DNA of 64,000 nt from Ylistrum balloti (lineage: Eukaryota): the NCBI RefSeq assembly GCF_031769215.1, contig NW_026781912.1:806001-870000 (forward strand), given 5' to 3'. Below the pieces are notes generated by a model. It was not told the DNA's origin, did no database searches, and saw nothing but the letters and a program-made list of their open reading frames with translations. The position numbers and the translations under genes were made by a program. Below are positions 10,014-61,419 of this stretch, piece after piece (within the stretch, counting starts at the first letter, position 1; the number at the start of each line of letters is the position of its first letter).

Positions 10014-10093
10014 TGACGTCACTGTCAATGGGATATTATGACGTCACATTGATTATCATGATTGCATTTCGGGATCGCGCAACTCTAGCCTAG
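10014..10093 (+). promoter_or_regulatory. Promoter of unknown gene copy A: two CRE palindromes plus conserved 31-bp block
   Basis: TGACGTCA at 10014-10021 and 10039-10046. TGCATTTCGGGATCGCGCAACTCTAGCCTAG at 10063-10093. All three are conserved in copy B. Confidence 0.75.
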
Positions 10094-10146
10094 CTACGGA
10101 CTTAGATGAAAGCTTATTTAATACCTCATCTAAGATCTACGCAAAT

Positions 10147-11073
10147 ATGGGTTGTACATTTACGAAGGTCAGGGACCCGCGGTCGCGTGCTGATGACGCG
10201 AAAATTTCGGAAGTCCTTAGCAAGAGTTCTCGTTCTATGAACTCAGAAAGGGATCTGGAGTACTACATTTCACCAGCGACGAGGGATGTTATAGAAAAAT
10301 GTCAGTTAGCTCTGTCTAAGACAGATACAGAGAATGATGACGTAATAAGTCTACATATGTATCCCCCAACTAACATGGAGGAATATTCGGAATCACAGAG
10401 CGTAGTCGTCGAAAGTGAAATAGATATCCCATTCTACCGGGACGAAACACCAGATTTGACACAAGATGTATCGAGCAGTGACACATCAACCAAAATGGAG
10501 AGCAGTCGATTTTCTTCCTGCCTTTCATCACGACTATCAAATTTCTTCCGCGGGGGAAAGCGAAGCAAGCAAGATCTGCAAGGAGAAGTGCCACGAGATG
10601 ACGAGTATGGAAGTGAATACGAAAGTGGAGATGACAGATCATCAAGTGGATGGAAGAGAACGCCTACACCTTCGCGTCATGACATGAAGAAAGCCATATT
10701 GCAAAGAACCAACAGCAGATTGTCTGACTTATCTCTTATGGTGGCTTCTAAAAGAGGGATTGGTGAGTACCAGGCAATGACACTGATTCACGACATTTTG
10801 GAAAAAAACGAAATGTCGGAATTAGAGATAGATGACGACGGCAGGTCGTCTTCTTCTTCAAGCACTGACGATTCTTTATTCCCTCCTCCATTCAACTTCC
10901 GGATCTTTGCCAGACCAAATGCCGCAAGAGGAACCAGGACTGTTGCTCGCGCTGCACCAAATCCAGCAGAAATTGCCCACAACATTGTAGAATTCGAGGC
11001 GGAAGTCGAGAAACTAATTGATAAGCATGCTGTAGCGACCAGGGATTTCCGAAACAGGCAACTTCGACCAGGG
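10147..11073 (+). CDS. Unknown gene copy A, exon 1 (309 codons); predicted N-myristoylated/palmitoylated Ser/Asp/Glu-rich protein, 380 aa in total
   Basis: Long ORF from ATG GGT TGT (MGCTFTK). Donor GGG|GTAAGT at 11074. A 95%-identical paralogue at 60-61 kb keeps the frame (only an in-frame 3-nt indel). Model: 10147-11073 + 11198-11413. Confidence 0.85.
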
Positions 11074-11197
11074 GTAAGTAGCGTCTGAATTTTGTTCGTT
11101 GAGTATCGGATTAGTCTTCAGATAGCTAGTTCGGATTATCGAAAGTCAGAGAAAGAAGGTTCCGTTGTCCATACATGTATATCTTGATTATTTTCAG

Positions 11198-11413
11198 GGT
11201 GCACGTGGTCCTCGCCTGCCGTCATTCAGCCTCCAGTTTCAGGATCCGGGAACAAGCACGAGATCCGGGACGGTGAAGGATAACAGATACAGCAAACATT
11301 TCACTAACACCGTGAGTCGTCCACAGCTGACTGTTCAAGGCCTCTCAGCAACGGACGACCGACTCACGCAATGGATGGTCAGTCAACAGAGGAGGGACTC
11401 CGAACGGCGATAG
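11198..11413 (+). CDS. Unknown gene copy A, exon 2 (GARGPRLPSF...QQRRDSERR*)
   Basis: Acceptor TTATTTTCAG|GGT at 11197/11198, phase 0 matches exon 1. TAG at 11411-11413. Donor A|GTGAGC at 11421 and acceptor TATTTTCAATTACTTTCAG at 11569 define a 3'-UTR exon 3, also seen in copy B. Confidence 0.8.
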   Translation, partial: GARGPRLPSFSLQFQDPGTSTRSGTVKDNRYSKHFTNTVSRPQLTVQGLSATDDRLTQWMVSQQRRDSERR

Positions 11414-12399
11414 AGTAAAAGTGAGCCTTGTGTTTTGTTACTTCGTACTGAAGATGTCAAAGATAATCAAAAGATCCGATTGAAGAATAACATCTGTTAA
11501 GTAAACTGAAATAGAAAATGAATATGCAAAAAGCAGAGGGAATCACTCGATATTTTCAATTACTTTCAGATGGATCTAAAAAAAGTCGTAAAAATGAACA
11601 GTGGCGTTATGAGGAAGACGGAGACATGGTTTTTTCAATACCAGCATCTTTTGCACTGAAACTGAATTCAGCCAAAAAGGAACTATCGCCAGGCTTCCAT
11701 TGATATCTGATTTACTCGATGTATGATACAATGAGATCACAATCAGATATCCATTTCCTCTATCCGATGGGCAATCAGCGCCCTGTGCGGCCTTCTGGGT
11801 AATCAATCACGCCATGCGTTAAGGGCCTCTTTATGTGTTGATATGACAGTCGATAATAATAAAGTTTTACAAAATTCCGAAACAGTTTTCAAACATTTTT
11901 ATTGAAACACAATTCATAGGCATTGGATTGACAGTGATTAATAATTTGGTATATAGAGTTAAATGTTTGTATAGCTACACAACTTTTCTATAAACTATTA
12001 ATATCTGTCATTTCAAAATCTCCATGTTAAACGTAGGACTGAGCATTCATGCAGTGACAGTTCACTTCATCAATAACGTCTCAGTGCAATAGGACTCATT
12101 CCTGCGGAGAAATTGAAAACAAACCAGTATCAGTTCGTACGGAGTTTTTCTTCTGCGTCTTTCTTTCAAAGGACATTAAAAATACCTAAATTGACATATT
12201 TTTTACCACTTTAACGTTTCGTATACAATTGTAGCTTCTTTTCCGTGTTTTCCCTGATACATAGTTTCATTTGTCGATATTGAAGTTTAAAGAAACTTTT
12301 TTTCAACTTATTTCTTTTCTATCTCATTTTTGGATTTTCTTTTATTGCAAATAGCAATGTTTCCGATGATCGATTCTTGCTCATATCCTCTAGATAGCA

Positions 12400-12510
12400 T
12401 GTGGTCTCCCGTATGTTGTTCAGTGATATAGCTACCAGATCCTACAAAAGGACCTGTCTCAAAATGACCCCGGCTGTTCATAAGACGATGAACGCAGCTA
12501 ACAAAAACCC
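12400..12510 (+). mobile_element. SINE 3' fragment (same family as 1570 and 49140)
   Basis: TCTCCCGTATGTTGTTCAGTGA..GCTACCAG..CTACAA..GACCCCGGCTGTTCATAAGACGAT matches the other two copies. Confidence 0.55.
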
Positions 12511-12835
12511 TTGATATCTCTAACTTTCGTTCTCAACATTGGTGATGAAATTATGTTTTCGTGATTTGCTTTGTTACCCAAAATGATCCATTCTTTTCCT
12601 CTAGAACCATTTGGGATTATTATCTGAATAAAACTCATTTTGAAAAAAGAAATCTTTTTCAATCATAAATTATTTTAATGTTGTACTGTACACATTAACA
12701 AATAACAACTCAAAACAACCGTTATAGTAATATCAGCCTTAAGATAGTACTGTACACAAGCTATTACCTCAAATCACAATATGGTAAATAATGAAAATAA
12801 CTTTATAACACAACAGAAACTAACATTATAGTAAC

Positions 12836-59739: not shown

Positions 59740-59744
59740 TCAGT
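59740..59744 (-). CDS. Unknown gene copy B, coding start of exon 3 (completes the Asn codon, then TGA)
   Basis: Acceptor TATTTTCAATTCATTTCAG matches copy A TATTTTCAATTACTTTCAG; phase 1 A|AC TGA. Confidence 0.55.
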
Positions 59745-60012
59745 CTGAAATGAATTGAAAATACACCGAATTTATTACTCAATAGCAGTTTATTTCGATT
59801 TTTAATGACTGAACTGTCCAATGAAATAGGAAACTACCAAAATAGTTTACCAAATGATTATATAGAGTATGCGTTACATTTGATTGCAGCAATACATGCC
59901 AAACCTATCATAAATACTTTTTGTCACAGCCAATTTAGTTGGACCTTAAGTTTTCATCTGAAGCTTTCTTTCCGGGTCTGCCTTAATTTAATTAGTAAAA
60001 TATTAAGCTCAC

Positions 60013-60235
60013 TGTTACTGTATCGCCGTTCGGAGTCCCTCCTCTGTTGACTGACCATCCATTGCGTGAGTCGGTCGTCTGTTGCTGTGAGTCCTTGCAC
60101 AGTCAGCTGTGGACGACTCACGGTGTTAGTGAAATGTTTGCTGTATCTGTTATCATTCACCGTCTCGGATCTCGTGCTTGTTCCTGGATCCTGGAACTGG
60201 AGGCTGAATGACGGTAGGCGAGGACCACGTGCACC
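60013..60235 (-). CDS. Unknown gene copy B, exon 2 (223 nt, same length as copy A exon 2)
   Basis: Acceptor TTATTTTCAG|GGT; GARGPRLPSF...RRDSERRYSN; donor A|GTGAGC. Confidence 0.8.
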
Positions 60236-60362
60236 CTGAAAATAATCAATATATACATGTATGGACAACGGAACCTTCTTTCTCTGACTTTCGATAATCC
60301 GAACTGGCTGTCTTAAGACTAATCAACGATTACTCAACGAGCAAAATTCAGAAACTACTTAC

Positions 60363-61286
60363 CCCTGGTCGAAGTTGCCTGTTTCGGAAATCCCTGGTCG
60401 CTACAGCATGCTTATCAATTAGTTTCTCTACTTCCGCCTCGAATTCTACAATGTTGTGGGCAATTTCTGCTGGATCTGGTGCAGCGCGCGCAACTGTCCT
60501 GGTTCCTCTTGCGGCATTTGGTCTGGCAAAGACCCGGAAGTTGAATGGAGGAGGGAAAATAGAATCGTCACTGCTTGAAGAAGACGACCTGCCGTCGTCA
60601 TCTATCTCTAATTCCGACATTTCGTTTTTTTCCAAAATGTCGTGAATCAGTGTCATTGCCTGGTACTCACCAATCCCTCGTCTGCAAGCCATCATTTGTG
60701 ATAAGTCAGACAATCTGCTGTTTGTTCTTTGCAATATGGCTTTCTTCATGTCATGACGCGAAGGTGTAGGCGTTCTCTTCCATCCACTTGATGATCTGTC
60801 ATCTCCACTTTCGTATTCACTTCCATACTCGTCATCTCGTGACACTTCTTCTTGAAGATCTTGTTTGCTTCGCTTTATCCCTCGGAAGAAATTTGATAGT
60901 CGTGATGAAAGGCTGGAAGAAAATCGACTGCTCTCCATTTTGGTTGATGTGTCACTGCTCGATACATCTTGTGTCAAATCTGGTGTTTCGTCCCGGTAGA
61001 ATGGGATATCTATTTCGCTTTCGACGGCTACGCTCTGTGATTCCGAATATTCCTCCATGTTAGTTGGGGGATACATATGTAGACTTATTACGTCATCATT
61101 CTCTGTATCTGTCATAGACAGAGCTAACTGACATTTTTCTACAACATCCCTCGTCGCTGGTGAAATGTAGTTCTCCAGATCCCTTTCTGAGTTCATAGAA
61201 CGAGAACTCTTGCTAAGGACTTCCGAAATTTTCGCGTCATCAGCACGCGACCGCGGGTCCCTGACCTTCGTGAATGTACAACCCAT
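60363..61286 (-). CDS. Unknown gene copy B, exon 1 (308 codons); 383 aa in total
   Basis: CAT at 61284-61286 shows the ORF is on the minus strand (the track label + is wrong). Donor GGG|GTAAGT. 15 substitutions and 1 one-codon indel relative to copy A exon 1. Confidence 0.85.
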
Positions 61287-61338
61287 ATTTGTCTATATTT
61301 TAAGATGAAATAGTAAATAAGTGTCCATCATATTGTAT

Positions 61339-61419
61339 CTAGGCTAGAGTTGCGCGATCCCGAAATGCATATAGAAACAATGATTCTGACGTCATAATAC
61401 TTCAAGGACTATGACGTCA
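61339..61419 (-). promoter_or_regulatory. Promoter of unknown gene copy B: conserved 31-bp block plus two CRE palindromes
   Basis: Block at 61339-61369 identical to 10063-10093. TGACGTCA at 61387-61394 and 61412-61419. Confidence 0.75.

Follow-up and report, generated by a model that had tools for sequence, protein, structure and literature searches.

A stretch of 64,000 nucleotides from the saucer scallop Ylistrum balloti (contig JAUZWB010000112.1; hereafter the window, to which bare nucleotide positions refer unless another locus is named) carries two convergent inverted copies of one gene of an uncharacterised family, copy A at 10147-11413 on the forward strand and copy B at 61286-60020 on the reverse strand. 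The two copies appear to be ancient inverted paralogues, located at positions shared with other scallops, whose coding sequence and first intron have been overwritten by ectopic gene conversion, a case of concerted evolution to which a probability of about 0.8 is given. Conversion between the members of an inverted pair is a familiar process, found here in an unstudied gene family. The 380-residue product of copy A is 100% identical to P0001 (XP_060079621, LOC132559032) and copy B corresponds to P0011 (XP_060079856, LOC132559252), for which the NCBI model has 401 residues; both loci bear the NCBI label 'uncharacterized protein'. A repeat search of the window resolves the inverted repeat into three gapless blocks that span 10131-11443 and 59990-61302, with the arms 48.5-49.7 kb apart (Table 1), and unique sequence borders the repeat on all four sides. 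Codon alignment of the two copies gives 18 substitutions and one codon indel (at 10849-10851) over 380 residues, the same count as had been made in an earlier reading of the window from its letters only (the sequence-only reading). The ~95% identity does not mark a young duplicate: the flanks of the gene stand at orthologue divergence around a homogenised coding sequence and intron 1.

The evidence for conversion comes from a comparison of the gene body with its flanks. Within the homogenised tract, intron 1 is ~90% identical between copies A and B, with 10 substitutions and one 3-nt indel over 124 nt. Beyond the edges of the tract, the Ylistrum copies are still homologous, yet they are no closer to each other than to the Pecten copies. 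In the 55 nt proximal to the 5' untranslated region (5'UTR), identity is 59% between Ylistrum A and B and 62-67% between Ylistrum and Pecten; in the promoter with its cAMP response elements (CREs), the corresponding values are 80% and 75-84%, and in exon 3, the 3'UTR exon, 54% and 59-71%. Since the flanks of copy B are old and independently diverged and its gene body is similar to that of copy A, ectopic gene conversion is indicated, and not a recent duplication of 1.3 kb. In Pecten the homogenised region is wider, with the four copies 96-100% identical in the 5'UTR and A2 88-90% identical to the B copies in exon 3, and the latest Pecten conversion event is older than that of Ylistrum.

The positions of the two copies are shared with other scallops. 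Copies A and B enclose three genes of housekeeping type, encoding HLH, RWD-domain and TRAPP-domain proteins, and each copy is convergent with its own inner neighbour. On Pecten maximus LR736842.1, the pseudogene A1 and the gene A2 point towards an HLH gene of opposite orientation, and at the other end of the block a TRAPP gene points towards B1 and B2, both of opposite orientation to it; A2 and B1 are ~53 kb apart. In Mizuhopecten a copy is convergent with the HLH gene and in Argopecten a copy is convergent with the TRAPP gene. The HLH-side position is therefore occupied in Ylistrum, Pecten and Mizuhopecten, and the TRAPP-side position in Ylistrum, Pecten and Argopecten. Taken together with the mitogenome species tree, (Mizuhopecten,(Ylistrum,(Argopecten,Pecten))) (PMC11354973), the shared positions imply that both were present in the ancestor of Pectininae. 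A conserved non-coding element of ~475 bp, located 0.7-1.6 kb outside the B copy or copies, has a mean column identity of 85% among Ylistrum, Pecten and Argopecten, which far exceeds the identity of the adjacent coding sequence. Its conservation shows that orthology in these three genera extends to the outer flank of the B position, and the orientation of the spacer relative to this outer marker is identical in all of them. The element matches nothing in Rfam, has no conserved open reading frame and shows no covariation that would support an RNA structure; an enhancer and a non-coding exon missing from the annotation are both conceivable.

In the protein tree, the copies group strictly by species, the Ylistrum pair with a support of 100/100, and approximately unbiased (AU) tests reject the clades based on position with p values of 4.7e-31, 1.6e-28 and 1.7e-6. 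Synonymous divergence (dS) is 0.091 between Ylistrum A and B, 0.25 between Pecten A2 and B2 and 0.41 between the two Argopecten genes; between genera it is 0.72-1.6, the Ylistrum copies being 0.76-0.80 from Pecten and up to 1.6 from Argopecten. Orthologous proteins are only 60-70% identical. The ratio of non-synonymous to synonymous substitution rates (omega) is below 1 in every comparison and, as judged from the value of 0.28 for Ylistrum A and B, both copies appear to be functional genes under purifying selection.

The history that best accommodates these observations would start, before the genera of Pectininae split, with an inverted duplication that left the HLH gene and the TRAPP gene each with a neighbouring copy; the age of the HLH-side copy would be at least that of Pectinidae. 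Repeated non-crossover ectopic conversion between the inverted arms would then have overwritten the coding region and intron 1 (~1.28 kb in Ylistrum), and the promoter, the 5'UTR, the 3'UTR intron, the 3'UTR exon and everything beyond would have been left to diverge. Conversion may be limited to that part of the gene which purifying selection keeps similar enough to pair, and this would account for the edges of homology at the start codon and just past the stop codon.

High identity, sharp edges and clustering by species would also be expected from independent recent duplications, in which case the 1.3-kb gene segment would have been copied recently across the three-gene block in Ylistrum and the Pecten pair would be a separate event. 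Such a history is quite improbable, as several lineages would each have had to receive insertions independently at the same two intergenic positions and with the same inverted orientation. It also leaves unexplained the promoter, 5'UTR, 3'UTR intron and exon 3 that copy B has of its own and that are as diverged from A as from Pecten; if the incoming segment had overwritten an older resident copy, the event would be gene conversion by definition. Omega values below 1 throughout are in keeping with the different proposal that no conversion took place and that old copies remain alike only through very strong purifying selection on the protein. Selection on the protein, however, cannot hold synonymous sites (dS 0.09) and an intron (~90% identical) alike, which makes this proposal extremely improbable.

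A further alternative is an assembly artefact, in which the gene is present only once in the animal and one copy is a misplaced haplotig or the product of a mis-join; identities of 93-96% fall in the range of allelic divergence in bivalves, and the reference assembly is at contig level. Logan contigs from four resequenced individuals of two studies, which are unphased, keep one path per bubble and drop variants, were compared over 8500-13500. The depth of the unique flanks is 33, 16-20, 10 and 16-18x in the four individuals, and the repeat is at ~2x flank depth in all four. The stretch 10664-10810 is represented by a pair of alternative 147-bp contigs, both at about single-locus depth, that show 3 and 9 differences from A, respectively, and 9 is the number of A/B differences of the reference in this stretch. 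Alleles of a single locus are expected at 1x and 0.5x, whereas ~1x for each version and ~2x for the shared parts are observed. In addition, a 1483-bp contig joins the interior of the repeat (11383) to the unique 3' flank of copy A, the repeat is an inverted one of only 1.3 kb with unique sequence on its four sides, and the identical arrangement is present in the independent chromosome-level assembly of Pecten. The depth pattern in the four individuals and the Pecten arrangement thus exclude the haplotig, which is left with next to no probability, and the convergent inverted pair about 48 kb apart, as described in the sequence-only reading, is real.

Several points weigh against the interpretation of the pair as ancient paralogues under concerted evolution, or against the function proposed below for its product. 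Mizuhopecten is seen at the HLH side only and Argopecten at the TRAPP side only, with the second Argopecten copy on another chromosome. In the promoter and the 3' flank, no clean position-specific signal emerges from quartet site patterns, because Pecten's own conversion covers both regions. The identity of the copies in other individuals is read from depth ratios of bubble-collapsed contigs, not from phased haplotypes. Lipid modification, location at the membrane and the function of the CREs are deduced from motifs alone.

The pattern of differences within the tract gives some indication that conversion may still be going on. The differences are clumped (dispersion p ~0.007), and the density of the divergent patch listed in Table 1 is reached in none of 5000 random placements; both versions of this patch are present at single-locus depth in the four individuals. 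The longest identical run within the tract is not longer than expected by chance (p 0.25). The stretch 10162-10693 is represented by a single contig at 1.9-2.1x flank depth, which is A-type at 11 of the 13 differing sites and B-type at the other two. B-type letters at 2x depth are found at 10291, 10416, 11239 and 11268 in the unphased, variant-dropped contigs of the four individuals. Single-path stretches where the copies still differ have a depth of 1.3-1.7x, as expected for a collapsed bubble. These observations are suggestive of a homogenisation whose extent differs between individuals, that is, of a polymorphic state of conversion.

Linked mirror-image paralogues whose coding regions evolve in concert by conversion are also found in Drosophila, in the pairs Hsp70Aa/Hsp70Ab and Amy-p/Amy-d (PMC3924832), and the identity of such palindromic pairs is high within species and lower between species (PMC3924832). 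Unlike in the Drosophila pairs, the scallop arms are separated by 48.5 kb in which three unrelated genes reside, the tract comprises only the coding sequence and intron 1, the conserved promoters diverge at the rate of orthologues, and the case is that of a mollusc and an uncharacterised family. The palindromes of sex chromosomes likewise have inverted arms that are kept near-identical by intrachromosomal conversion, around a spacer that is not inverted (PMC3403216). Their arms, however, extend over tens of kb up to Mb, non-coding sequence included (PMC3403216), whereas in the scallop homogenisation is limited to the 1.3-kb gene body and nothing points to sex linkage. The locus appears to be a clean and well-bounded mollusc case of concerted evolution, with both ends of the tract only a few bases away from the start and stop codons. 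As consequences, duplications in the genomes of scallops cannot be dated by the identity of paralogues, orthology assigned within the family from sequence alone will be wrong, and the mapping of short reads to copies A and B is ambiguous save at rare diagnostic patches, of which 10734-10753 is one.

The transcript is predicted to have three exons, the last of which is a 3'UTR exon in copy A because the coding sequence ends in exon 2. The coding sequence of copy A spans 10147-11073 and 11198-11410, with a TAG stop at 11411-11413, and the protein end at this position is common to every full-length relative at the locus. Copies A and B both have open frames and canonical GT/AG splice sites. The donor of intron 2, GTGAG, is located 7 nt past the stop in 9 of the 11 copies printed, both Ylistrum copies included, and reads GTAAT in one copy of the second cluster described below. 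Exon 3, which opens at 11570 in A and at 59744 in B, is preceded by the acceptor TTTCAG (TTCCAG in one) in each of the seven aligned copies. The conserved donor and acceptor, together with exon 3 itself, bear out for the transcript the three-exon gene with intact frames and AG/GT sites that had been proposed. In copy B, the stop codon has mutated from TAG to TAC, so that 4 residues are added if intron 2 is spliced and 22 if it is retained. An alternative splice from an in-frame GTGAGT (~11311) to exon 3 was considered as the main form and rejected, because conservation across the family, Pinctada included, is highest in the residues encoded downstream, RPQLTV.GL ... W.

The promoter of the family is unusually well conserved. 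Twin full CRE palindromes, TGACGTCA, are located upstream of copy A at 10014 and 10039, and CREs at -139 to -131 and -112 to -108, with 23-27 bp between the members of a pair, are present in 8 of 9 locus copies from four genera. The Argopecten copy on the other chromosome keeps one CRE, and the copies of the second cluster have the invariant block, one full CRE and a TGACGTAA variant. The near-invariant block of ~35 bp, GCATTTCGGGATCGCGCAACTCTAGCCTAGCTACG, follows the CREs at 10064-10098 and 61334-61368 and is retained, with no more than two changes, by 11 gene copies from four genera of scallops. One CRE and the core of the block, GCATTTYGGGATCGCGC, are also found upstream of P0012 (L008:9930-9960), a protein ~25% identical to those of scallops; the promoter module, composed of a CRE or CRE pair and the GCATTTYGGGATCGCGC core, is thus conserved deeper than the protein, being recognisable at 25% protein identity. 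As judged from the letters, a full palindrome, TGACGTCA, within ~150 bp of the start and conserved between species marks the region as a candidate CRE promoter. On the other strand, the core of the block shows a putative resemblance to the Staf/ZNF143 site. With such a promoter, the family is a readily accessible candidate for a reporter or an effector of transcription that depends on cAMP in bivalves. A full CRE-like palindrome, ATGACGTCAT, is also present in exon 3 of all four Pecten copies (L001:11540-11560, L002:11300-11320); it is degraded in Mizuhopecten and in Ylistrum A (~11612-11621) and deleted in Ylistrum B.

The sequence-only reading recognised no domain in the protein, and the searches agree with it. 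Pfam gives no match above noise for 17 members or for both exons, the best profile match in PDB sequence and profile searches has an E value of 0.25, and two feature searches of the ESM Atlas reached a best score of 0.78 with nothing usable. The AlphaFold2 model, built on a 17-sequence alignment, is poor, with a mean confidence (pLDDT) of 53 and a predicted TM-score (pTM) of 0.20; 222 of the 380 residues have a pLDDT below 50, and confident helices are found only at 177-222 and 273-294. A fold search with VIA-align returned only generic two-helix hairpins with Z of at most 6.2, and no fold is assigned. The protein contains 21% Ser+Thr, 16% Asp+Glu and 14.5% Lys+Arg.

Of the 12 scallop proteins compared, 11 start with MGC[KT]FTK, the exception (P0006) being annotated from an internal Met, and distant relatives start with MGCCQSS and MGCKFCK. 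N-myristoylation and S-palmitoylation follow a rule of Gly2, a small uncharged residue at position 3, a residue of Ser/Thr/Cys type at position 6 and no Pro at position 7, and dual-acylated anchors that start with MGC are known in G-alpha i/o subunits and Src-family kinases. The N-terminus of the family fits this rule as a pattern match, and it resembles the G-alpha i/o and Src-family anchors in having Met-Gly-Cys, Ser/Thr/Cys at position 6 and a basic residue next to it. Unlike those proteins, the scallop protein has no kinase, GTPase or other folded domain and is predicted to be disordered, with few helices and short motifs. The product would be mostly disordered, rich in serine and charge, anchored to the membrane through N-myristoylation of Gly2 and palmitoylation of Cys3, and expressed from a twin-CRE promoter of CREB/ATF type; it may be a lipid-anchored disordered adaptor or phosphoprotein under CREB/ATF-type control.

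It could be argued that the protein is a membrane-anchored feedback component of the cAMP/PKA pathway resembling the A-kinase anchoring proteins (AKAPs), given the MGC acylation motif, the conserved promoter CREs, the amphipathic helix conserved at 273-294 and, in most copies at the locus, a C-terminal RRDS(E) site. This is very unlikely, as there is no sequence or profile match to AKAP or any other characterised family, RRDS becomes a proline-directed S-P in distant relatives, and the hairpins returned by the fold search are generic. The AKAP idea as such has no support beyond the amphipathic helix, which, as compared by eye, did not fit the RII-binding pattern. A broader, though still unlikely, proposal is that the family is an invention of pteriomorph bivalves, a dual-acylated disordered membrane phosphoprotein wired to cAMP/CREB that would act as an inducible feedback regulator or scaffold, with a promoter module (CRE or CRE pair and GCATTTYGGGATCGCGC core) conserved deeper than the protein and with conversion keeping two dosage-equivalent copies under regulatory flanks that evolve separately.

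The family was described as lineage-restricted with two members kept as a spaced inverted repeat; the restriction to a lineage and the spaced inverted pair hold, and the number of members does not. Ylistrum balloti has at least five, copies A and B and at least three paralogues on another contig, and members are present in other scallops, in all four genera examined, and in Pinctada. Word-based and profile searches found two in Argopecten irradians, three annotated in Pecten maximus, three in Mizuhopecten yessoensis and three further ones in Y. balloti. In Pecten, tblastn on the fetched loci added an unlisted 380-residue copy and a frameshifted pseudogene, which gives a total of four copies at the locus and one elsewhere. 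Beyond scallops, a profile search of 1.84 billion representative proteins gave only P0012, apart from a bacterial false positive; P0012 has 296 residues, is encoded on a eukaryotic contig in an ENA assembly and, when used as a query, leads to a relative in Pinctada imbricata. The bacterial repeat protein, P0013, matches only a short acidic D-D-G-R stretch and was rejected. The distant relatives share the MGC start, two RP.AA[RK]G.R motifs, an EFE.EV..LI helix and a C-terminal RPQLTV.GL...L..W. Within the reach of HMMER, no members are found outside pteriomorph bivalves and one eukaryotic contig. In the literature, no paper names any locus name of the family.

The additional copies differ in their arrangement. 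The second cluster of Y. balloti, on JAUZWB010001261.1 (L009:3173-4399, 10001-11303), is a direct tandem array, LOC132543227-229, in which two genes are seen in tandem 5.6 kb apart; these genes have deletions in the middle of the protein and the same CRE-plus-block promoter. In Pecten maximus, there are extra tandem copies on both arms (L001:316-1597, L002:9729-9830). Pecten A1 has two frameshifts, at ~979-982 and 1073, and B1 has an internal duplication of ~60 bp near its 5' end that breaks the frame, so that the NCBI model starts at an internal Met (310 residues); the B1 and B2 proteins are ~100% identical. The second copy of Argopecten irradians, P0002 (L003:9066-9353, CM084270.1), is on a chromosome different from that of the TRAPP-side copy and has ~0.7 kb upstream a fragment similar to the HLH gene, with 41-51% amino-acid identity to the HLH gene region of Ylistrum. 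P0002 could be a relocated A-side copy with a rearrangement.

Table 1. Features of the Ylistrum balloti window. Paired positions separated by a slash are the A-side and B-side arms of the inverted repeat.
Feature	Position	Strand	Remarks
Repeat block 1	10131-10856 / 60577-61302	inverted	96% identity
Repeat block 2	10834-11105 / 60331-60602	inverted	93% identity
Repeat block 3	11109-11443 / 59990-60324	inverted	93% identity
Homogenised tract, A side	10142..11426	+	1285 bp, 54 differences from B, intron 1 included
Homogenised tract, B side	60007..61291	-	counterpart of the A tract
Divergent patch	10734..10753	+	8 substitutions in 20 bp: L197Q, V199M, S201C, K202R
Copy A promoter and 5'UTR	10014..10146	+	twin CREs and invariant block; outside the homogenised tract
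Copy A coding exon 1	10147..11073	+	309 codons, starts MGCTFTK
Copy A intron 1	11074..11197	+	GT..AG; within the homogenised tract
Copy A exon 2	11198..11420	+	coding to 11410, TAG 11411-11413, 7 nt of 3'UTR, then the conserved donor
Copy A intron 2 (3'UTR intron)	11421..11569	+	homology to B stops in the first bases (~11426)
Copy A exon 3 (3'UTR exon)	11570..11660 (3' end approximate)	+	homologous to exon 3 of all copies aligned
Copy B promoter and 5'UTR	61287..61419	-	twin CREs at 61412-61419 and 61387-61394, and invariant block
Copy B coding exon 1	60363..61286	-	308 codons
Copy B exon 2	60013..60235	-	ancestral stop changed to TAC at 60022-60020
Copy B intron 2	59745..60012	-	retention carries the frame to a stop at 59954-59956 (NCBI 401-aa model)
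Copy B exon 3 (3'UTR exon)	59660..59744 (3' end approximate)	-	splicing of intron 2 adds YSNN, stop here
Conserved non-coding element, B outer flank	62400..62874	-	~475 bp; also L002:2033-2510, L004:8842-9320
HLH gene, 215 aa	14336..17579	-	Pfam HLH on the called product; convergent with copy A
RWD-domain (RWDD1-like) gene, first coding exon	36214..36300	-	Pfam RWD 24.9 bits, cut-off 22.8
TRAPP-domain gene, 3' part	49954..50459	+	180-aa product; last ~0.5 kb seen; convergent with copy B

The HLH, RWD (RWDD1-like) and TRAPP genes listed in Table 1 are in agreement with the bHLH, RWDD1 and TRAPPC3 genes that had been named between the copies. A search of the whole window against Rfam gave no match. 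Directly upstream of the promoter of copy A, there is a high-copy repeat at 9335-9668, with a contig depth of 600-7700x as compared with 10-35x in the flanks in the four individuals and many loose contig ends at 9348 and 9544; it probably represents a piece of a transposon or the unit of a satellite. A lesser repeat, at ~5x, is located at 12341-12507, and runs of N occupy 183-339 (157 bases) and 1756-1932 (177 bases).

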